Positions 9,375-49,241 of a stretch of 64,000 nt of DNA are shown one piece after another. Location of the stretch: contig OX337230.1 in NCBI GenBank assembly GCA_946965045.2, positions 62,001 through 126,000 on the forward strand, written 5' to 3'. Each line of letters starts with the position of its first letter. The stretch's first letter is position 1. The notes below the pieces were generated by a model, which was not told where the DNA came from, did no database searches, and saw nothing but the letters and a program-made list of their open reading frames with translations. Both the position numbers and the translations under genes were made by a program. Source of the stretch: Epithemia pelagica (taxonomy: Eukaryota; Protista; Bacillariophyta).

Positions 9375-12300
9375 ATGATGATCAAGTTGGGCAGCAAGGC
9401 CCTCCTGGCCGCTTGTCTCTTGGGAGTCCTGGACCGTGTTTCTGGGGATGGTGGTTCTGTTTGTACGTTTTGTTGTTGTTGTAATTTGTGTCGCACATTC
9501 AAGCTTGTTTGGTGCTTTGGCCAAATTCCATGTTGCTGTCAAGCCATGAATCGTCCCATTCTCCCTTGTTTTTCTTTTCTAACTGCCCTGTTTTCTTGTT
9601 TCATGTTTCGCTCCCACAACTTGACTTCGATGACTCACGAAATCATAATCGTCTACTGCCAACGTCCAATATACAGCTTCTGGAGGGAATACGGGCTTCG
9701 GCGGTGACAACCCTTTTGGATACGTAGACCCACAGCCAGATCCAAGTAAGTGCCATTCCATCAGTCACTCCAAGAATTGCTTGACACCTAGGACTTTGTG
9801 TAAATATGTGGGAATCTCCAAACTTGTGTGTCGTCAATCTCTCACTTCCAACGTTTTGACTGTTGCATTTATCTTCAGCCGATCCCCCCACCTATGTCGT
9901 TACGACGAAATCGAGTGGTCTTTGTACCGCCAACTCCACGCGGAACTACTACCCCGGACCTTTGAAGAAAGGCACGGCCTCGCCCACCAATGCTCCGACC
10001 CCAGAGCTTATTCCCAATGAAGAAACGCCCGCTCCTACTTCTGGACCGACCAGCGCACCCACGGCTGGACCCACGGCTGGACCCACGGCTGGACCCACGG
10101 CTGGACCCACTGCTGGACCCACGGCTGGACCCACTGCGAGTCCCACTGGTGGTCCAACGGCTGGTCCGACTGGTTCTCCCACTGCCGGTCCGACTGGTTC
10201 TCCCATGGCGGCCCCCACTGGAGGTCCCACCGCCGGACCTACGGCCAGTCCTACTGGTTCTCCCACGGCCGTTCCGACTGGCTCTCCCATGGCCGCTCCC
10301 ACTGGTGGTCCGACCTCTGCTCCCACTGCAGGTCCTACGGGCGGCCCTACCGCAGGTCCTACGGCCAGCCCCACCGGCGGCCCTACCGCAGGTCCAACTT
10401 CAGCTCCCACGAGTGGTCCAACTGGTTCTCCCATGGCCTCTCCGACTGGGGGTCCAACGTCTTCCCCTACAGCTGGGCCCACAGCTGGGCCCACAGCTGG
10501 GCCCACAGCTGGTCCAACGCATGGTCCGACCTCTGCACCCACATCTGGTCCCACCGCCGGCCCAACATCCGGTCCAACAGACGGACCTACAGCTGGGCCC
10601 ACCTCTGGTCCCACATCAGGCCCCACCGGAAGTCCTGTGGCTAGTCCCACCTCCGGTCCAACAGCTGGGCCCACAGCTGGTCCAACGTCTGCCCCTACGT
10701 CTGGACCCACAGCTGGGCCTACAGCTGGTCCGACCTCTGGGCCCACAGCTGGTCCAACGTCTGCCCCTACGTCTGGACCCACAGCTGGGCCTACAGCTGG
10801 TCCGACCTCTGGTCCCACAGCAAGTCCTACAGCCGGACCTACAGCTGGTCCGACCTCTGGTCCCACAGCAAGTCCTACAGCCGGACCTACAGCTGGTCCG
10901 ACCTCTGGTCCCACCTCTGGTCCCACATCAGGCCCCACCGGAAGTCCAGTGGCTAGTCCCACAGCTGGCCCGACAGCTAGTCCCACAGCTGGCCCGACAG
11001 CTAGTCCCACCGCCGGTCCGACAGCTGGTCCAACCTCCGGTCCCACATCGGCTCCTACCTCGGATCCCACCAAAGCTCCGACTCATGGACCAACTTCGTC
11101 TCCCACGGACGGGCCCACTCACGGTCCGACCGCAAGCCCAACGTCTGCACCCACCGGGTCGCCATCCGCCTCGCCGTCCAATACTCCATCCATGTCCCCC
11201 ACCGAGACCTGTGACGACCGGGAACTTGATATTTGCATCGCGATTGATAATTCAGGATCCGTCTGTTCTCCTAACGAGCCCGTGGAGTGCTTCGATTGTC
11301 ACTGTCGCGAAAACTCAGAATGGTACAATAATGATCAAACCAAGTGTTGTACAAACTTCCAAAACGAAATTAGTTTCGCGTCCAAGTTCATGACGTCTTT
11401 GGATGAAAAAACACCAGGCTACGATCAACAGTTTTCCGTTGTATCGTTCTCAACTGAGGTATTGACAGTACACCCGCTCGAGAATGCCGCTACTGCAAGT
11501 GAGAACACAATGAAATTAGTTTACAGGGGTGGATGGACAAACACTGGTGATGCCCTTAAGGCTTGTTTTGACACGTTGAAGGATTCCTATAAGGAACGTG
11601 TCATTCTTGTGATCACCGACGGTGTAGCCACAGCTGGTCACGATCTCTACAACATTACTGGAAAAGCAGCTGATGACAAAGAACATCATGAGTACGCTAT
11701 TGGACAAGCGGACTTGGCCAGAAAGGCACGCATGACTGTCATTCCTGTATCGATCGGCGATTCCACTTCTTTCAACAAGGACAAGCTCATGGAGATTGCC
11801 TCTGGTTATACTATGTTCCTTGACGTTGACAACTTTGATGCTTTGACGGACAGTGATGGATTGGTTGATCAACTCTTGGAAAAAGTCAAATGTGGTTCAA
11901 GTCAAGGTTTCATTGATGGCAAGTGGGAGCCTGTGAATTTTGAGGATTTCACGAACTACGTTGAAGGCGACAGTTTATGGTCCTTCAGGGGTGGTGCTGC
12001 TCGTGTTAACGATGAAGGCGTTACTACCCTTCCACATGCGTTCCTCAACAACTATGCACAATTCTGCCCCTACTCAACCGGTGCTACCGATTATTGCGCT
12101 CTCTTGCTTGGTGATACCATTGAGGACGAGCACAACATGATGGAAAACATGGGCTACGTCATCTCCAGCCCTGTGACTGTCGGCAGCACTGTTATTTATA
12201 TTCGCCTCAAATTTGATTACCTCGTACATTTTTGGCTAACGGATGAGTATCATATTCATGTGGACTACAGTACGGATGGTGGACTTACCTGGTCGATTCA

Positions 12301-33752: not shown

Positions 33753-34436
33753 TGTCCCAAAACCAAAAAATCGGTGATAATAGTACCATCCAAACTCATC
33801 AAAGGACAGAATCGGGCGATGTTTGCCGGTACCGATATGTCCCGAAAAGGCTTCTGAGGATGCACGCAGCGGTGGCCCAGTATATCATAGAACGTTGACC
33901 ATGCAGTTGGGGGGCCACCATTTACGATGATACTGCGACAAGAACTTGCATAGTGGCTCTTTGTATGGCTTTGGCGCATTATCCACGTAGGTGATGAAAC
34001 CAAAAATTCCGAAATCGTACAAGGCACGGATGGTGGATAACAAGATCAACCTGATCATGTAAGGCTAGATGAGGAATGACACATAAGACGAAGGACGACT
34101 GGGTCAACAGGTCGAGATCAGGGGGAACCTTCCATACCTTGCATCCTTTCAAGACTCTTGTCGTAAAACGGCGTGTGTATAGTCCCTCAAACCACCCTTC
34201 GAGTGGCATGTTTTGACCTCGTCGACACATGGGCGGCCCTCACGTGTGTCGAAAAACCAAGTCTACAAAGCCGACAAGGAAGAACCTGCACAAGATGCTT
34301 CTTCGTTTTGACTTTCTCCAAAGGAATCTGTACAACAACAACTGCTACCTTTTGCCATGGGGATTACAAACCGACAAGGGATACTATTAGAGAGAAGCGT
34401 ATGTCAAATCGGTGTGTTCCCTATAATTATTTCAAC

Positions 34437-37400
34437 TTACGACGGGGATCCCTCATCACAAAGGTCAACCACGCTCTCACTACTGATGCTGGTACTGGGT
34501 TTGGGAATGTAAATGGTTCCACCATACAGTTGCTGATATTTGGCCAGGTACTCTTGGACGATTTCTTGTCCCTCACGGACCCATTGGTCTCGATTGTGCA
34601 TGGCATATAGTTCAAATATTCGTGACTGCTCACGCCAAAGACACCGCAATTTTCCAACTTTTTGGCCAAGGGAATGATATAAAAGTCAAAAAAGCCAATT
34701 TCGCCCTGATACCAACCAAGGGATGGATCCGTGCCTGTGGCACTTCGTCCCGTACAATACCCATGGTACATTTCCAAAAAGAATCGTTCGTTCCATGTTC
34801 GATAGACTTGCCAATGTTGCATGGTATGAGCCACATCGGAGGCTTGAATGAAGTGTTCAATCACAATGGTCGCCTTGCGGTTGGTACTCAAGAGCATTTG
34901 CTTTTCCTGTTCGGGGTTGGGTTGTGGAGCCGGGGGTGACTCTTGTTGTTGCTGCTGCTGACGAAGCAAGAGGGGCGACGGCGATGCTGGAGTTGCGGTA
35001 CTGTTGCTACCGCCCGTACCCGAGGATTCGGCGGCAAAGGCGACTTCCCATCGCGCTTTGCGCAAGGCATTCAAATGCTTATCCACAATGTCCGTGGCCA
35101 AGACTGTATTGACGACCAATTGTCGAAAGCGTTGAAATTCTTGCGGCGTCCGGTAAATACACGACCGCAATTCGGTATAGGCCGGCGACAAGAGCAGTTT
35201 CCACACCAAATCGATCGAATGTTGTTCGGCAATGGATTGCCGATACCGTTGGGCTTCGACCGTTTGTTCATGTACCAAGACGGCATTGGGCACTCCAGGA
35301 TGATTGGCATCGTGCATGAGTGCGGAAAAGACAACGGCAAATTGGGTCAAGGGATCACTCGTGATCCCATAGGAATGGCCCAGACCGTCCACCAATTCGA
35401 CACCCGAAGTTGAAAAGTCACCGCCAGCACTTTCAGAGGAGGAGGAGTTGGTTCGGTGTTGTGATGGATGAGAACTGCCCAAACCACTCAAGGCCAAACG
35501 GGAACTTCGATCGGCTTGGACAATCCGCGTCAAGAGTTTGCGCACGGATGCAGTCACATGGCTGGCGTGCTGTAACAAGGAAAACACAAGACAAAATGTG
35601 AGAAACAAGGACGGTGTTTCACCAATGCGCCAAGCAAATCCAAAGGTCGCGACAACCAAGAAAGAGAGAGATGCCATACCTCAAAATTGTGAAAAGGATT
35701 CGAATTGGAATACAAATGCGCAATGCTCGTGACCAAATCACGCAACTGATTCTTGACGGCAGGGCTGAGTTGGGGGAGCGCCGTGTTGCGAGGACGGGGC
35801 TGGGCATCTTGTTGTTGTTGTTCCCAGATCGTGGGTTGTGGTAATTCAATAATGGGCTGGAATTCATCCAAGGCTGTCGTCGACCGTTGACATGATTGTG
35901 CCTCGAGCTTGGACAACAAGTCTGCCATGGCCGTAGGCATCGATTCGATGCCTGGCACGTTTCCTCCGTGCTGGTCGGCGGACTCGCCGCCCTTGGTGGT
36001 AGGATTGTTCTTTTTCTTGTTGGACCAAGTGTGAAAGATGCTGATACGTCGCTGCGATTCGTCGTCCTTGGTGCTGGTGGCGTTGTCTTTGTGATTTTGG
36101 TTGGGGTTCCGGGCAGCCAAGATTTGTTGCAGCAAGGAGGCCAACACCTCCGTGTTCCATTCAATCAATCGTTGCTCTTTGCTGAGACTCTGTTCGAGAT
36201 TGACACTGTTGCTGATGTTCTGGCGAGACGAATTGTCATCATCTTCTTCGTCGTCATCCTGAAACTCTTCCACCATGTCCAATGTGGCCGTGTCCAAAAG
36301 ACTTTCTCCAGGATGTTGTTCCATGCGATCTTGCTTCTTGTTATTGTTGTTGGTGATCTTGGTACTGACCAGCCAATAGGTTTGCATTTGGCCCTTGCCC
36401 TTGACTTCGACAGCATCTTGACGTTGTTCAATCCAGGAATCCAATCCATAACGAGTCAGTTCGTGGGCTGTCGTACTAGACATTTGGACGCTGTTGGGTG
36501 CACTCGTACTGAATCAATGAAACAACATTTGACAAGGACACATCAAGGAAACGAGAAAAATACCTGTTAGATGGATGTTTCGACATGCTGTGATATAATT
36601 CGAGCGAGAGGTAACTGTTCCGTACCTTTCCATTCGAGCTGCGGTATTCCAGGGCCAGTGCATAACCCCGCGTGGCAGCTGGATTCTTGCTAGTGTTTAG
36701 CGTTCGAATAAACTTCTCAAGAACTCTAGTTCGTAACCTCTCCGTTGGCCCCTTTTCGCTCACGGGAAAGTAGGCCTGAAAAAGTTGCTCGAGCGCTGCA
36801 CATAACAACCAAACAAGGAAATGGTTGTAAGTCATGTTTGCCGGGGTTCAGTGAGGATTTGAATTTTCAATTGATAATAAGCACGTACCGGTATCTCCAA
36901 ACAGTTGGAATCGAGATCGCTCTCCACGAAGGACTCCTGCCGTAACTTGACCAGAATGGAGACCGACGCGAAGTTGAAGGTCGGCAGTGTCAGGGCCCAA
37001 TACCAGCTCCAATTGCTGAGTCAATTTGCGGAGTGTTCGAATGCAATCCTTGGCAAATCGGGCCGCAGCAATGGCATGATCATCACGGGTGTCGGGTAGA
37101 CCCGCGACGGCAACATAGCAATCCCCCACCACTTCTACCTTGAAGACACCATGACGATAGGCCAACTTGTCAAAGGCCAAGTAGATGTGTTCCAATAGCT
37201 GGAAGCAATGAGACGGCTCACGAGTCGACGACCAAGCCGTAAAGCCAACAATGTCCTGGCGCAAAAGCCGTCCAAAGAGAAATTTAGAAACATACGTCGA
37301 TTCCAATGATGAGAACGAGATTCCATACGTACTGCAAAGATGACTGTGGTCTTGAGGAACAAGTCAGCCAACGCAGGTGCATCACTGGAGGAAGGAGATG

Positions 37401-38988
37401 GATTCTCGGGATCCAACAAGTCCACAAAGTCTTCTTCTCGGTCCCTGGAGGTGTGGGCATAGAGACGATCCCGAATCTTGGTGGGGAACATGTTGGCGAC
37501 AATTCGATGTTGTCGTGTCACACGGGTCATGACCGCAATTTGTCGACGACGGACTGAAAAATCATAGATTGCAAAGACCAATACCGTAAACCCGAAAATA
37601 GCCAAAACGGCCAACGTGTAAATCAAAGCTTCGTTGGTTCGATACGAATCCTCGAATCGTTTGGATGGATAGAGAAACAAGGACAACTGTGGCATGCAAT
37701 CAATCCCTCCCGTGAGTTCTTCAACATTATCAGGATAGTCAAACTGGACAAAGGGGGCAGAAACCACCATGTCGTCGTACTTTGGATCATGCAAATCCCC
37801 GGATCCCATTGAGACGGCGTTCAAACCGTTGATCTCATATGTGACTGCGACACCATCATAGCCTACCCCGTCGCATGGACTTTTGAGGACTGCAATGATT
37901 CCGTTGGCATTATCAGGCAAGAGGTTTTCAAAGTAAGTCACCCAATCAATGGCAACATGAAGGTATCCAACCGGATCTGGGCGATCTTCAATCTTGGTCT
38001 TTTCGTGGTCGTCCAAATCGGGAACTTCCGTGAAGATTGGATGCATGATTTGACTTTCCAACTTGTCCAAGCGGGGGTCATCTGGATGAATGTTTACAAG
38101 AAACTCCATGGCTGGCGATTTGGTTGCAGAGGCCAACACATATGTGTTGTTGATCCTGGGTCCATTCCTTGCATTGTAGTTGGTCCATGCTGTTCCTGCA
38201 AGAATATAAGTTGGGTATGTTTGATAGATGGGAAGCCAAGGTCCGGGACGGTGTTCGAGCGGAAAAGTGTCATCCGTAAAATTCCAAAACCACAAACCGT
38301 CCTTGTTTCTCAATGTTGCCTCCATCTCGGCTGGGGTAACGTTGAGCTTCTCGGTGAGGAGTCCGTCCTCGTAAATCCCAATCCGCTCTTGCTCCACGTA
38401 CGCGTTCCATTGATCCCATTCTTCTTCCTCAACCTCTGGCAAGAAAATAACCCAATTTGCTTTGCTCAATCGCGCCACACGTTGGGCTCGAGCCGAAAAG
38501 TCTTCCACAGTCACATATGGCCATGAACTGTTGGTCGATGCTGCATAGGAGCTGATCGAGGCACCAAAGGCTTCAATGGCGTTGAGAGTGTTTTGCACAT
38601 TGGAACGAGAAACACTCAACACTTCGCTGGCAAAGTTGTCAAACTGATAGAACAAGATCAGACAAGACGATTGTTTTGTAAGACGACCACGATGAACAGG
38701 AGAAAGTGAGATATCACCACGTACCTGGGATTCAAAGGTTTCATCTTCATTGTTGGAAATGAGACGATGCATTGTAAAGGAAAAGATGACAACGACGACA
38801 GCCAAGACGATAAAGACGACGACACGAGACCAAAAGACGGCCGACTGCTCTTTCCGAGCGACCTGAATCTCGGAGCTGCTGGCATCACTGGTTTGGCCTC
38901 CCACATCATGGTTATCATCGTAGGAAGACGACTTGGACTTGGCGGTAACACTTTCACCGCCGCGAAGGCTTCGTGCTGTGCTCATCAT
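34437..38988 (-). pseudogene. Membrane nucleotide cyclase-phosphodiesterase fusion A (TM-sensor-TM, class III cyclase, class I PDE); disrupted
   Basis: VIFA-DIVGFTAWS, VFKVEVVGDCYVAV, RSRFQLFGDT, VKGKG..TYWL, FHNFE-HASHV, HDANHPGVPN, IQASDVAHTMQHW. A foreign insert sits in the micro-exon at 36626-36795, and a 2-nt (TA) duplication frameshifts YLNY/AMHNR at about 34616. Confidence 0.85.
36650..36795 (-). other. Captured coding fragment resembling tubulin-folding cofactor D (TBCD)
   Basis: Translates as (A)ALEQLFQAYFPVSEKGPTERLRTRVLEKFIRTLNTSKNPAATRGYALAL. This resembles my recollection of the TBCD segment AL..F...Y...N.A.RRG.ALALG. It is unrelated to cyclase sequence. Confidence 0.65.
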
Positions 38989-41085
38989 GGCGTGACGACA
39001 GAAGAGAACGAGTTTTGTTTCACTCGACCGAGAATTTTGTGACCATTCCGACCATCGCCGGATGTGCATTCTGGATTGCCAACTGGGCGTCGTCACCCTT
39101 TCATGATTTGGTTGGGACAGATTAAAAGATTTCCCCTCGCATATCATTATTATTGAAGGCTTGATCGGAGAACGACCACATTCAGGAGTATTTGCAGTAC
39201 TGATTCAAAACGTGAAAAGACAGAATCTGTTCGCAGAATGGCGGACTGTCACCAGCTTTTGGCGTGCGTTCGTTGCAGGAGGAACAACAAAATGTGAATG
39301 ACAACTTGTCGATGTGATAATCATAGGGCCCTACCATTAAGACGCTTTTGCACACCCTCCTAAATCTGGTGTTGTCCCTTTGAACTTTGAAGATCTAGGT
39401 AGACGATGCCGCATCTCGTCGCATTGTACACGAAAACTATTAAAGTGTTCTTGTAGCAACTTGTAGGGGAAATGATATTGGATAGGAGTAACAGATAACA
39501 GCCTATACTGCCTCTACTCGGACTTCTAGCTTCTAGCTAGTAGAGCTAGCGAGACGCGTAGATCTTCTTTTTTGCGTCGACTTCGCAGTAAATTCATTCG
39601 GCTTCAGTCACATTTCGAAGGTAACTGTGACTCGTAAACTCCCAACCAATAAGTATCATGGAGAGTAGACTTGTCGACGAATACGACTAGAGGGAATATA
39701 CATTCCGAATTCCGATGGGTGTTGAGATATGAGGTCAGAGCTCAGAGACACTTGGAAAACAGAGATATAGATAGAGAGCCACACTTTCTTGTACTGCGTT
39801 TGAACGCCGACAAGGAACAATCTTATACTAGGTAGATGAGTTCTGGAACGAGACGCCCCTTTGTCTAGGGAATTTTGGGAAGAAGCAGGAATGCCAAACA
39901 CAGTTCGACAGACTTGCGCAAGGGGCATCATGAGTGTCGAATTTCCAGAGTCCAGAGTCATGTCGTTCAGTACCTATAGAAAACCAAACTCTAGCAGGAC
40001 TAAAACGCCAACTCTTCTTCCATGCGTGATGGATCATCTTGTGTCAATACGAATATCATGATGACATGAGCGAGGTATCTTCTACTACGACACATTATGA
40101 CAGAGTGCGTTGACAGGTCTCTACAACATACACACAACATATCCAACCATTGTCATCCACAAGAAACCCCGACTACTGCGGGCCATGAAGAATCTCCGCC
40201 CATATAAAGCTGCTGTGATTGGGGGAAAATCACCGGAACAAATGCCGCCGTGGTAATGGACCACAACGTTTCTTCTGGAGCTCGAAACAGATGATGATAA
40301 TGTGTGCAATACGAGTACAAAAGCCGAGAGGCTATTCGAATGGTATGTGTACAACGTTTGCGTCACGGACAACGGATCCCCGACCCCAGACTCCTCCTCT
40401 GTTTCTGGAACGTTCCTCCCTAGTGCACCTCTAGTAGTGGTATGGGACTCGTCCCTCGGAATGCGGCGTCCTATCGAATAAGACGAGTACTACTACTATT
40501 GTGATTCCTTTGTGTTGCGGCATGGCCATGGCGGTGACGGACCCAGCAGCAGCAGCAGCAGCAAGTTGTTGAGAGTATCGACCTAAGTACACCTAGTTGG
40601 AAGAGGTCGATTTGGTTGTTCGGTTGGAAAAGTATATTATTGTATTTTATTTGTTTGGAACTGTTCCATTGTTCTTCGTGTAGGACTATAATATAGCCGA
40701 GACTAGACTAGCGAGAGAGTTTCGTTCTCCTCTGTAGTCCATGCTAGCTAGAAATGCTACCCACTGCCGAGCGAGCTACGCGCCGGGCCTCGAGAGGCAT
40801 GAACTTTATCCGCGACCACTGATCGCAAAAAGACACGTCAAAGACACCAACAAAAAGATCGACCCGGCAACGCAACAGTGAAGAATATAATAGACAGAGA
40901 GAGACCCTGTGTGGAGAGACGACGATGCCTTGCCCATGATTTGATCTATAGAATACTACTGGTACTACTGTGATTCCTCCATCGTTTCAAAGCGTCTCGA
41001 ACGAGAGCCGCAACTCTGTATTCCATTCGGAATCGACGGAATTCCAAAAAGAAAAACACTCGCTACAATCCAGCAGCACCTCGCA

Positions 41086-44021: not shown

Positions 44022-44458
44022 GAAGACGAAGAAGATGATGACAACGACGACCATGACGATGAGGAATCCTTTGACAAAGAAGAGCAACATGCTTCTGAGC
44101 AAGAGTTGAATGCTCAACTCTTGTCCATGATGATGACGACTCCTTCCACCACCAATGACACGGAGGACAATCCTAGCTTACCGGAGTCTCATGGTCCACA
44201 AGAACTGCCTCCATCAGACGAGTGACGCCATCTACTGTCTCCGAAACAGACCAATCCGTACCGAAACGAGGTATCCGAGTAAAGACGACTTGTGCTATAG
44301 ATAAACAAAGGTACTATTAGTCTACACTGGTTTGTTTTACCGTCTCTCTCTATCAAGTAACAAAATTGATCACTCATTTCAAAGCCAAAGAACCATTTCG
44401 TGTACCAATGACTCACAAGAATTATCATAGCAAGTTCGAGGTAAACCGCATCATCGTG

Positions 44459-47400
44459 CTAATATGACGGTGACAAGGAGGACAATTCGGACGAGCGCCT
44501 CCGTGCAGTAACACTTCGGACAACGGATGGGTTCACGTCATAGATTTCTCGAACATGTTCCACCAATTCCTTCACCACCACTTTTCCACGCGCTTTCCAT
44601 TCTTTCAAATTGCGTTCGGCATAGTTCAAGTACTCATCGCTGGAGACACCAAAGACACCGCAGTCTTTCAATTTCTTGGCCAGTGGAATGATATAGAATT
44701 CAAAAAATCCAACCTCGCCCTGGTACCAAAAGTCAGCCGGGTTCGTTTTGGAACGCCCCATTTTGTACGCCTTGTACATTTCGGCAAACAACCTTTCGTT
44801 CCACTTACGGTACACATGCCTCAGATGACGAGCATGAGAGAAAAGAAAAGATCAGAGGGTAAGCACTTAGGTTGTATCGACACTTGGTCTCTCTACATGT
44901 GACCACCTGGTCCCCAAACAAACTTACCAGTGTTGCATTGTATGTGCGACATCCGATGCTTGAATCAAGTGTTCAATGACAATGGTGGCCTTTCGCTGAT
45001 TCGTCGCAAGAGGATCATCCGTCGCGGTTTGCTCCGAAAAGGCCAAGTCCCATCGAGCATTCCGTGAATCCTTGAGCTCCTTGTCCATAATATCCGTGGC
45101 CATGACAGAGTTGACCATCAACTTCCGAAAGCGTTGCAGTTCCTCGTTCGTTGTGTAGATCATCCGTCGGAGGTCCACGTAGCAATCATCAAAGAGTAAA
45201 TCCCATGCCACATCCACAGAGTTTTGTTCTGCGACACTGCGGCCTTTGTAGTAGCTGGCAAGCCCTTCGTTCTCCTTTACCAACTGGCTGTTGGGAACAC
45301 CCGTGTGGTCAACATCGTGAACGAGAGCCGACAGGATACAGGCAAATTGTGTCAATGGATCCGACGTGATACCGTAAGTGTGGTCATGAAGCGTTTGATT
45401 TTTGGCGGCGCTTGTTTGAAAGTCCAGGTCAGTTGGTGCAACGATTCGGGACAGCAGTTTGGATACGGACATGGTAACATGACTAGCATGTTCAAAATTG
45501 TGAAAGGGATTGTCACGGTACATGGTCGAAATCGTCGCCACATAATCGTACAACTGCGACTCGGCGTCAGGGTCAAGCGTAATCTCTTCGGGTGGAAGCT
45601 GCATCTTGGCAACTGCTGGGTCAAACTCGGGAAGTGCAATCCGGTCTTCTACTTCCTCCAGGATCGTGCGGTCCTGTTTGCGACCAAAGTCTTCTACGGG
45701 AATCATGGATTCTTCCGGGTCATGTTCATAGGCGTTCCGACGAGCGACAATGCATTTCAAATGGTGGAGCAAGACTTCCACATTCCAATCCACCAATCGA
45801 AGGATTTTCGATGTCGCCGGTGGTTGTGAAACAACTTCTTCGTCTTCTGGCTCGGTGACATCATCCGATGAAAAGGTTGCCGCGCTCCCACTGTTTTTGG
45901 CGCTACTGGCTTCTCCAAATCCTGCAGAAGAGGTCCGATGGGTGGGAGGGCAATCTCCAATTTCCTGCTTCCGTTTTCCATGACGCACTTCCAGCCAGTA
46001 GGTCCTCAATTCTCCCTTTCCCTTGGCATTGACAAGGTCTTCTCGGGGCCGTATCCACGACTGTTTACCCACTCCAATAAGCAGATCTGCTGTGTCCTGT
46101 GAAATTTGAATCTTTCCCCGTACTCCTGTCGACTCCATTCTCGACGCAGTATTCATGGTGTCCCCAAACAATTGAAACCGAGATCGTTCCCCACGAAGGA
46201 CACCCGCCGTGACAGGACCACTGTGCATTCCCATTCGAAGTGCCAAATCGGCCGTGTCTGGACCCAGTCTGGTTTCCAGCTTTTTGGTCAAGGTACTCAT
46301 CTTGACCATGCAATCCCTGGCAAAACGGGCCAATGCGACTGCATGATCGGTTCGTGGCTCGGGAACACCCGTAGCTGCAACATAACAGTCCCCCACCGTC
46401 TCCACTTTGAATACCCTTCGCCGATTGGCAATTCTATCCAAAACAAACACAGACACAAAAACGCAACATGAGACCATGTTCACAGACAGCGAATGCATTT
46501 GCGATTGTCACGACACGTACTCATCAAAGGCTCGAAACAAGGTCTCGAGCAGAATAAACACTTGACTTGGTTCGCGGGCCGAGCTCCACGCCGTGAATCC
46601 CGCAATGTCGGCAAACAAGACGGACGTTTCTGGGAATAAGTCGGCAATGGGTTGCGAATGGTACAGATCTTGGTCCATTTTGGTTTCGGTTTCATCCACC
46701 ACCACCGTACTTGGTTGAGACTTTCGTCGTCCTCGATCGGCGTCGGCCAAAAACTTTTTGAGTCGGGTTTGGATCCCCGCGTGATGATGATGATGATGGT
46801 ACGGACTAAACGGATAATGGCTTTGATTTTGCTGTTGTTGTTGTTGTGCTTCGCGCCGTTCGGCTTCTTCCTCTTCGGCCAACAATCGGTCTCGTACCGT
46901 ATCTGGAAAGAGGGACGATACAATCCGACCCGACCGCATGGCAGCCTGAACCATTTTTTGGTTCCGTCGCCGAACGGTACGATCGTACATGAAAAAGGCC
47001 ACGGCCATGAGGGCAAAAATGGCTGCCACCACACCCGCCACGACTTGCGGTAAATTGGAATGATGTTCGTTGCTCAGTTCCTGTGTGGGATACACATGGA
47101 GTTGGTACTGGCACATGGTCTGATTCCATTCTGGAGACGATCCGTCGTGTCGATTCCCCAGATCCAAGACTGTTTCCAAAAAGTCAAAATCTCTATTGTG
47201 ATGGTCTCCTTCTCCCAGATACAAGGTCTGCGCGCACACAAGTCCAAACGAAACTTGAGCGTCCACAGTTTCCCACGATACACCACCAACTCTCTGAGAA
47301 CGCACCTTGGTTCCATTGAGAAGATAGGAATGAACTTGTCCACACGAATTCCTCAATACGGCATGCACAGTGCCGGCACCTTCCCTGCAGATCCCGATAA

Positions 47401-49241
47401 GAGCATTCCAGGAGCCCAAACACACGCACACAGACGAGGAGACGGAATAACCAAACGAGACACGTGTGAGAAACACCTTGGTTGTCTACCTCTAGACTAG
47501 CTCTCATCTCTCTCTCTCTACACCACACATATATAAGAACACACGTACGGCAATGCAGTTTGCAAATAGACATTCCAGGGAAGCAATCCCAACACGAGTC
47601 CGACCACCGACGACGAGAATTCTTCATCGCTCTTGTCCAAGACGGGTGTCAGGACCAAGGACTGTGGTTCCGTGTTGTTTTGCTGCCTTGGAGACGACAA
47701 GAGTGCCTCGTGGACCCAGTGGTCGACCGAGACAATGGGGGTCACCAGAAGCAGTGTGCTGGTGGATGGGAGGAGCGACAGGGATTGTAGGACCACTGGT
47801 TCGGCCAAGAGATTGTAATTGATGGAGACTTGTGGATTGTAGGGTGGGGGAGACGTCTTTTTATAATATATACAGTAGATGATTGCCGCCGCAGGATTCA
47901 GAGTGTCGTTTGGTATAAAGAGTGCCAACGAGGAACCAGAAGCATGAGAGAGACGACCCACGAATGAGACAGAAAGTCACCCAGGTGTTGTTGACCTATA
48001 CGTACCTGCCACATGGGCAAGAGCCATTGCACTGGATGGCTAGCATTCCCTGTAGGGGGAGACCACGTGGTGGTGGCGGGTCGTAAGGGAAGACGAGATG
48101 ACGACGACGACGAGAATTCAAAGACAAAGGGTGTAATGTCCGTGTCATTTTGGTCCAACGGTTCGTCCCACAACACGGAATGACTTGTGGCCATCCATTC
48201 GGGTGCCATTGTGGCCGAGTACATGTTCCAGTCGTGATTCTGGAACGGGACCGTCCCATTCGGGTCCGAAACAACGACAAGGGGAACCAAGGGTGCATAG
48301 ACCACGAGTTTGAGGCCCGTCTGGAGTCGAATCGCACCCGCTCGAAGTTCCCAATCGGGCAGAGTGACCCAGGGAACGGAGGAATCAGTCGTCAGATTGT
48401 GTTGGAGCTGTTGTTGTTGTTGCTGTTGCCATTGGCCATGTGCGGAAAGGGCTTGGCTCAGAGACTGGAGGGCCACGTGAATGTGGTCCATGCGTTGGGT
48501 GAGCACGGTACGTACATTCTCCACCAACAAGTTGTACTGTATGTGAGTGTGTGTACCAACACCAACACGTAATAACAAAGAGACCAAGCACCAAACAACA
48601 AGAACAATTAGAATCCTCATGAGAAAAATACAGGCACCCAAACAAAAGGTACCCATACCAAACCATGCTCTCGTTGTCTGTATGTCTTTGACGCACACAT
48701 TCTCTCTGTCTCTCTCTCTCGACAAAATCACACACACGCACACGCACACACATACAGTCGTGTCTGTACGTACACTGGTTTCAAAGGTATCGTCTTGTTG
48801 TTGGAGGAGGATCCAATAGGACCCAATGGCCGTCAGGGCCCCCGTCGCCAACAAGAGAGTCACGACCAAGATGCGCCATACCAATAGGATGGACTGCTGT
48901 CGCTGTTGCTGCGAGCGTGACACTCCCAACCACGACGACGAACCAGTCCGAGCAACAGCGGGAGACGACGCATGCTTTGAGTGTGTTGGAGGAGGCGTGG
49001 CAACCACATGGACCGTTCGTCGTCGTCGTCGTTTGCGACCGAGAGGACTCCAAAAGGGACTCTGCCAAGTTTGGTTCCGATGCGAGGCGAGAGGCAAAGT
49101 GGGTTCTTCGTCATCGTCATCGGAGGAGGAGGAAGAAGAAGATGCTTCCAAACGGGACGTTTCCTCCGGTACCGCATCGTCATCCTTCGTGCTGTTTTGG
49201 TTGTCGTGATGGTCCTGGAAGGAAGGACTGCGAATCATCAT
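44459..49241 (-). CDS. Membrane nucleotide cyclase-phosphodiesterase fusion B, multi-exon, no lesion found
   Basis: N-terminal TM (ILLVWRILVVTLLL), second TM (VVAGVVAAIFALMAVAFFMYD), cyclase (VLFADIAGFTAWS, VETVGDCY, FQLFGDTMNTASRMES), PDE (FHNFEHASHV, HDVDHTGVPN, IQASDVAHTMQH, WYQGEVGFF). Confidence 0.9.

Follow-up and report, generated by a model that had tools for sequence, protein, structure and literature searches.

Class 2 templated sequence insertions (class 2 TSIPs) were described by Onozawa and Aplan as filler or patch DNA at double-strand-break junctions (PMC5110952). SD-MMEJ or polymerase-theta templated insertion and MMBIR (PMC2943611, PMC2621351) start from a 3′ end that pairs with a short identical stretch, is extended along it and is then re-joined; their insertions typically span a few to some tens of nucleotides and derive from nearby sequence. 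Intron gain by break repair has also been described (reviewed in PMC3443670), and fragments of host genes are duplicated to new loci by Pack-type elements and as class 1 TSIP retrocopies. Among the genes of pennate diatoms is a cyclase/phosphodiesterase (GC/PDE) fusion type (PMC4726125). A gene of this fusion type in the diatom Epithemia pelagica was found to contain a piece of the coding sequence of tubulin cofactor D (TBCD). The insertion is judged to be a real, recent repair patch, and it most likely inactivates one of many cyclase paralogs.

The gene lies on the minus strand of the window, the 64,000-nt stretch of DNA that was analysed. Profile searches, exon by exon, found a Guanylate_cyc domain and then PDEase_I in one gene, as in a class III cyclase-phosphodiesterase fusion. 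After the large N-terminal exon (37333–39147), which belongs to a 670-aa ORF, a 77-nt intron (37332–37256, donor GTACGT) splits the metal-binding motif IFA|DIVGFT and leads to the upstream cyclase exon (36889–37255), which reads from DIVGFT to FQLFGDT-G and matches positions 14–131 of the Guanylate_cyc profile. Next come a 93-nt GT-AG intron (36796–36888, donor GTACGT at 36888) and a chimeric exon of 170 nt (36626–36795). A 117-nt intron after RME-AG (36509–36625), at a position common to the paralogs L009 and L015, leads to an exon (35680–36508) encoding the end of the cyclase domain (profile positions 140–182) and a linker to FHNFE. The PDEase_I domain is encoded by the phosphodiesterase exon of the same gene (34427–35569), and the continuity of FHNFE|HASHV agreed with the homologues P0003 and P0004. 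Profile positions ~132–139 correspond to the interrupted NTAARMES piece. Its retained codons N-T-A-A-R-M-E plus AG, the catalytic Asn/Arg helix motif of class III cyclases, occupy 36626–36648; by direct reading, a GTACGG donor comes directly after the 23 nt AATACC...GGAAAG at 36648–36626. The patched gene is open in all its other exons. Protein database searches returned ORF-level fragments of this gene only, and neither a transcript-derived nor a full-length model of it.

Dozens of paralogs are present in the genome, including clusters on contig C5 at 3.42–3.49 Mb. A second cyclase gene (L027) lies on the minus strand ~9 kb away (window ~44200–47600), and its motif GDTMNTASRMES is uninterrupted. 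Elsewhere in the window, positions 10001–12000 had a GC content of 58%, against ~47–52% in the remainder, and a negative GC skew. A sister copy of the cyclase/phosphodiesterase gene was detected on a 263,420-bp ENA contig (P0001, P0132, P0149 and P0155) and is not in the assembly of the window. It is 93–98% identical in protein, and its N-terminal part is split into three ORFs; the ORF of the cyclase exon was not found there, and similarity to the window stops near 36477. This copy may represent a diverged haplotype, a homeologue or a gene of a sister species. The intron within IFA|DIV (37256–37332) was absent from 15 of 15 paralogs checked but present in the diverged sister copy (read-through VRMES in P0132). 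Being private among the paralogs and yet shared with the sister copy, it appears to have been gained in this lineage, inside a conserved catalytic motif.

As seen by base-by-base alignment, 153 of the 154 bases at window 36802–36649 (minus strand) were identical to the genome's own TBCD, corresponding to nt 2341–2494 of its ORF (residues 781–831). A DNA search of the window's own assembly (G000, 60.5 Mb, 23 contigs) located the donor segment on another chromosome (G000:C5:1981499–1981652, minus strand, 99% match), inside an intact TBCD gene. The preliminary description had recognized tubulin cofactor D from the peptide and proposed a templated copy, and both points were borne out: the match is near-identical and the donor was left intact. 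The patch keeps the sense orientation and the codon phase of TBCD, and on either side of it identity to TBCD falls abruptly to 1/10 and 2/10, the level of chance. Direct reading placed 147 nt (36795–36649) between the acceptor AG (36797–36796) and AATACC, with the 3′ end of the insert (...GCCCTGG) abutting AATACC directly, so that the chimeric exon comprises 147 nt of TBCD and the 23 nt of cyclase codons for NTAARME-S. Read from the G at 36889, the 147 nt translate as ALEQLFQAYFPV...NPAATRGYALAL, a peptide that starts with ALEQLF and ends with RGYALAL; the coordinates first given, and the reading in frame with the upstream exon, were right. The sole mismatch to TBCD is at 36692 (minus strand), with T here and A in TBCD (ORF nt 2451), and is synonymous in the TBCD frame (ACA/ACT).

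The TBCD donor is one continuous ORF of 1263 aa and the only full TBCD copy in the genome. It matched three Pfam families, all above the gathering scores used as cut-offs: ARM_TBCD_2nd (6e-92, 307.9 bits, cut-off 29.7), TFCD_C (1.9e-30, 106.6 bits, cut-off 22.4) and ARM_TBCD (28.1 bits, cut-off 27). Introns are absent from TBCD in and around the copied region, and a DNA and an mRNA template would therefore yield the same product. Within the 60.5 Mb, the patch sequence was found at three places, namely the donor, the patch and an old fragment of 82–83% identity, and their end points differ; a multi-copy transposable element, which had been named as the finding that would speak against a templated copy, was thus not what the search returned.

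The old fragment (L005:5392–5759; G000:C5:723391–723758) corresponds to TBCD nt 2093–2444, with ~82% identity and many indels, and overlaps the part of TBCD that is present in the young patch. It ends exactly at the start of a duplicated block (84%/78%) of two kinase-gene paralogs, and a truncated Pkinase ORF (L005:5732–6250, minus strand) runs into it. Since the fragment ends where the homology of the kinase paralogs starts and the truncated kinase ORF enters it, the fragment has the appearance of an older filler at the junction of a duplication. It stops at TBCD nt 2444, 7 nt short of the mismatch at nt 2451, so the mismatch is not polarised by it.

At the left junction, the heptamer TGTGCAG (36796–36802, minus strand) is common to the end of the 93-nt intron and to TBCD, and it holds the acceptor AG at 36797–36796. 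These bases may be a 7-nt microhomology, or the patch may simply begin with them; microhomology at the acceptor had been noted before, at a length of 4 nt instead of 7. At the right junction one G is shared between the patch and the cyclase side, and 1–2 nt of the Val codon seem to have been lost there, as judged from the paralog consensus GT(G/N). Paralogs read GDT-(V/M)-NTA(A/S)RME, from which an exon of 25 nt would be expected at this position; with its present 170 nt, the exon would have grown by 145 nt. The preliminary description had given the 170-nt exon correctly and the putative ancestral micro-exon as 26 nt.

A repeat search at the junctions found neither direct nor inverted repeats, and thus no target-site duplication (TSD) and no terminal inverted repeat (TIR), in agreement with what had been reported from the first reading. 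By direct reading, no poly(A) or A-tract and no LINE target motif were present at the insert. Capture by a transposon or Pack-type element was rejected on the lack of TIR and TSD, the low copy number and the differing end points, and a LINE-type retrocopy on the lack of poly(A) and TSD. The absence of repeats and of an A-tract, the intact donor and the three places with different ends point to a class 2 templated sequence insertion, and the overlaps of 7 nt and 1 nt are end-joining signs of the kind expected at its junctions. On these sequence features the insertion appears to match a known kind, and no new mechanism would be needed.

We consider it probable that the insertion is a young templated patch that closed a double-strand break in a cyclase gene whose 93-nt intron was already there. 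In the order of events that we infer, the break would have occurred at the 3′ end of this lineage-specific intron and would have been closed by copying ~147–154 nt from the single-copy TBCD coding sequence on another chromosome. On the left, the broken end with the last bases of the intron may have annealed to the identical TGTGCAG in TBCD DNA or RNA, from which synthesis would have run through the 147 nt. On the right, the new end would have been joined with the one shared G and with loss of 1–2 nt of the Val codon. A 25-nt exon would in this way have become one of 170 nt.

The consequences for the product depend on the acceptor. The frame count agreed with the earlier statement that the 170-nt exon shifts the frame by one. 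When the acceptor at 36797–36796 is used, translation gives 49 TBCD residues in frame, then a frameshift over the bases of NTAARMES, and then a stop, a premature TAG (36476–36478, minus strand) 10 codons into the next exon. Fifteen AG dinucleotides were tested, and only the cryptic AG at 36691–36690 (minus strand) kept both an open frame and NTAARMES; the AG at 36640–36639 leaves the frame open but deletes VNTA. The cryptic site gives a 64-nt exon in which Val is replaced by 14 residues. It does restore the frame, as had been proposed, with a net gain of 13 residues where 12 had been counted. A pyrimidine tract precedes the acceptor at 36797–36796, with no other AG between them, and the tract of the cryptic site is poor; the frameshifted form is for this reason predicted to be dominant. 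The mRNA of the patched allele would then probably be a target of nonsense-mediated decay, and the allele is most likely a null. Judged from these predicted products, a gene-breaking lesion is more likely than a useful new exon, and the preliminary description's account of a housekeeping fragment that had been exonized is not established in the sense of a useful exon.

The age of the 93-nt intron is the main point on which an alternative has to be weighed. GDT-(V/M)NT is free of introns in each of the 16 paralogs examined, and also in the closest of the database homologues that were read, P0011, P0012 and P0014 (62–69% identical); L009 and L015 share the downstream intron and still read GDT-V-NTAARME-AG|gt uninterrupted. 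The 93-nt intron is therefore private to the patched gene. Its AG is TBCD-derived, lying within the TBCD-identical stretch, and so the whole 240 nt between GATACCG and AATACC (36888–36649) could be one compound insertion, made in a single repair event from 86 nt of filler and 154 nt of TBCD. By this account, the exon was formerly continuous, no micro-exon ever existed, and the intron was born with the patch, with a donor starting at base 1 of the filler and an acceptor in the TGTGCAG of TBCD. Neither a 25-nt micro-exon, which is an unusual ancestral state, nor a break exactly at the intron/exon border, which is a coincidence, is then needed, and both count against an older intron. But an own-genome DNA search (E≤10) for other copies of the 93-nt intron returned the locus itself only, and a source for the 86 nt (36888–36803) was not found in the genome, the window or the neighbouring intron, where matches were at the level of chance (score 16 against the neighbouring intron, shuffle mean 14.4, no significant similarity). 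If the filler were as young as the TBCD part, a near-identical source would be expected; the TBCD part is 99.4% identical to its own, in a 60.5-Mb assembly of only 23 contigs. The 86 nt also begin with a perfect GTACGT, run into a pyrimidine-rich end and have a GC content of 37% (~49% for the window), a combination that is rare in random filler. In its donor, which is that of the 77-nt intron, in its length, which is within 77–117 nt, and in its GC content, the 93-nt intron is like the others of the gene. A GTACGT donor also belongs to at least one further private intron of the gene, the one within IFA|DIV, which is already in the sister copy. An introner-like or repeated intron family was rejected as its origin, no near-identical copies being present in the genome. 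An intron older than the patch is accordingly favoured, and a compound insertion is possible but rather unlikely. The pre-existing micro-exon and acceptor that had been assumed in the preliminary description are, however, not established: the 86 intron-like nucleotides speak for them, and the continuity of all 16 paralogs and the position of the AG inside the TBCD stretch against them.

The remaining alternatives concern the use of the insert and its reality. Were the donor at 36888 spliced to the cryptic TAG at 36692–36690, the product would be an in-frame cyclase with 13 residues added before NTAARMES, a functional exonization in which the A-to-T change at -3 would be a compensatory improvement of the cryptic site. 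TAG is a better acceptor than AAG. The only substitution in the 154 nt falls on just this base and turns a purine into a pyrimidine, for which the chance of one random change is ~0.4%, a figure noted post hoc; the site is also the sole one of the 15 that preserves the ORF together with the catalytic motif, and the open state of the other exons would fit a working gene. We nevertheless regard this as very unlikely, given the stronger upstream acceptor and the poor tract of the cryptic site. Moreover, the T at 36692 could merely reflect allelic variation in the donor, or the change may have occurred in TBCD itself, and 13 residues beside the catalytic Asn/Arg are likely to be harmful to activity. 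In TBCD itself (L004), the 147 nt lie between a pyrimidine-rich ...TGTGCAG on the left and a GT on the right, like a cryptic exon. This is probably a coincidence, of ~1 in 16 given the left microhomology. An RNA- or spliceosome-linked placement of the piece at the 3′ splice site, again with a compensatory change at -3, would account for these bounds and has a slightly smaller probability still; if true, a housekeeping gene would here be giving rise to a new coding segment. The least probable reading is an artefact of assembly or sequencing, in which a chimeric join put TBCD bases into the cyclase locus. Near-identity of the insert to another locus is what such a join would produce, but the copy differs from the donor at one base, the two junctions are 154 nt apart in unique sequence, with flanks that are collinear in the same gene. 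In addition, a 119-aa ORF spanning both junctions is encoded identically (119/119 residues) on an independent-looking ENA contig of other size (216,046 bp; the contig of the window is 4.37 Mb), and further ENA-derived ORFs on that contig are identical to those of the window. The agreement of the two assemblies on the chimeric ORF is supportive rather than decisive, as they may share reads. An exact-pattern scan of JGI metagenome contigs did not find the exon/intron junction.

The preferred reading, a repair patch placed beside an older intron, makes this locus a clean and datable case (one difference in 154 nt) of an inter-chromosomal templated patch in a diatom, with both junctions readable and the patch placed precisely at a splice site in a gene for signalling. 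Taken with the older TBCD filler, it suggests that patches recur, as a cause of gene disruption in this alga and possibly as a source of new exon or intron material. As a single case it leaves knowledge of break repair unchanged. An annotation of the gene should mark the frameshift and should not treat the TBCD-like peptide as a domain fusion.

Among known systems, the patch is most like the class 2 TSIPs (PMC5110952), being a short copy from a distant transcribed locus with the donor intact, no target-site duplication and no poly(A), microhomology, a microdeletion of 1–2 nt and a disrupted coding region. Unlike them, it is found in a diatom, has landed exactly on a 3′ splice site, and keeps the sense orientation and the reading frame of the donor; its 7-nt overlap is longer than typical end-joining microhomology. 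The scheme of annealing, copying and re-joining of SD-MMEJ, polymerase theta and MMBIR explains an overlap of 7 nt on one side with a near-blunt join on the other, although 147 nt from another chromosome is well outside the usual size and distance of such insertions. If the compound insertion were true, the locus would resemble intron gain by break repair (PMC3443670), the filler having made a new GT-AG intron in a conserved exon; it differs in having no flanking short direct repeats, in an intron part with no identifiable source, and in that splicing of the 93 nt leaves the frame unrestored. With Pack-type elements and class 1 TSIP retrocopies it shares the duplication of a host-gene fragment to a new locus, but it has no TIR, TSD, poly(A) or element body, and exists as one young copy.
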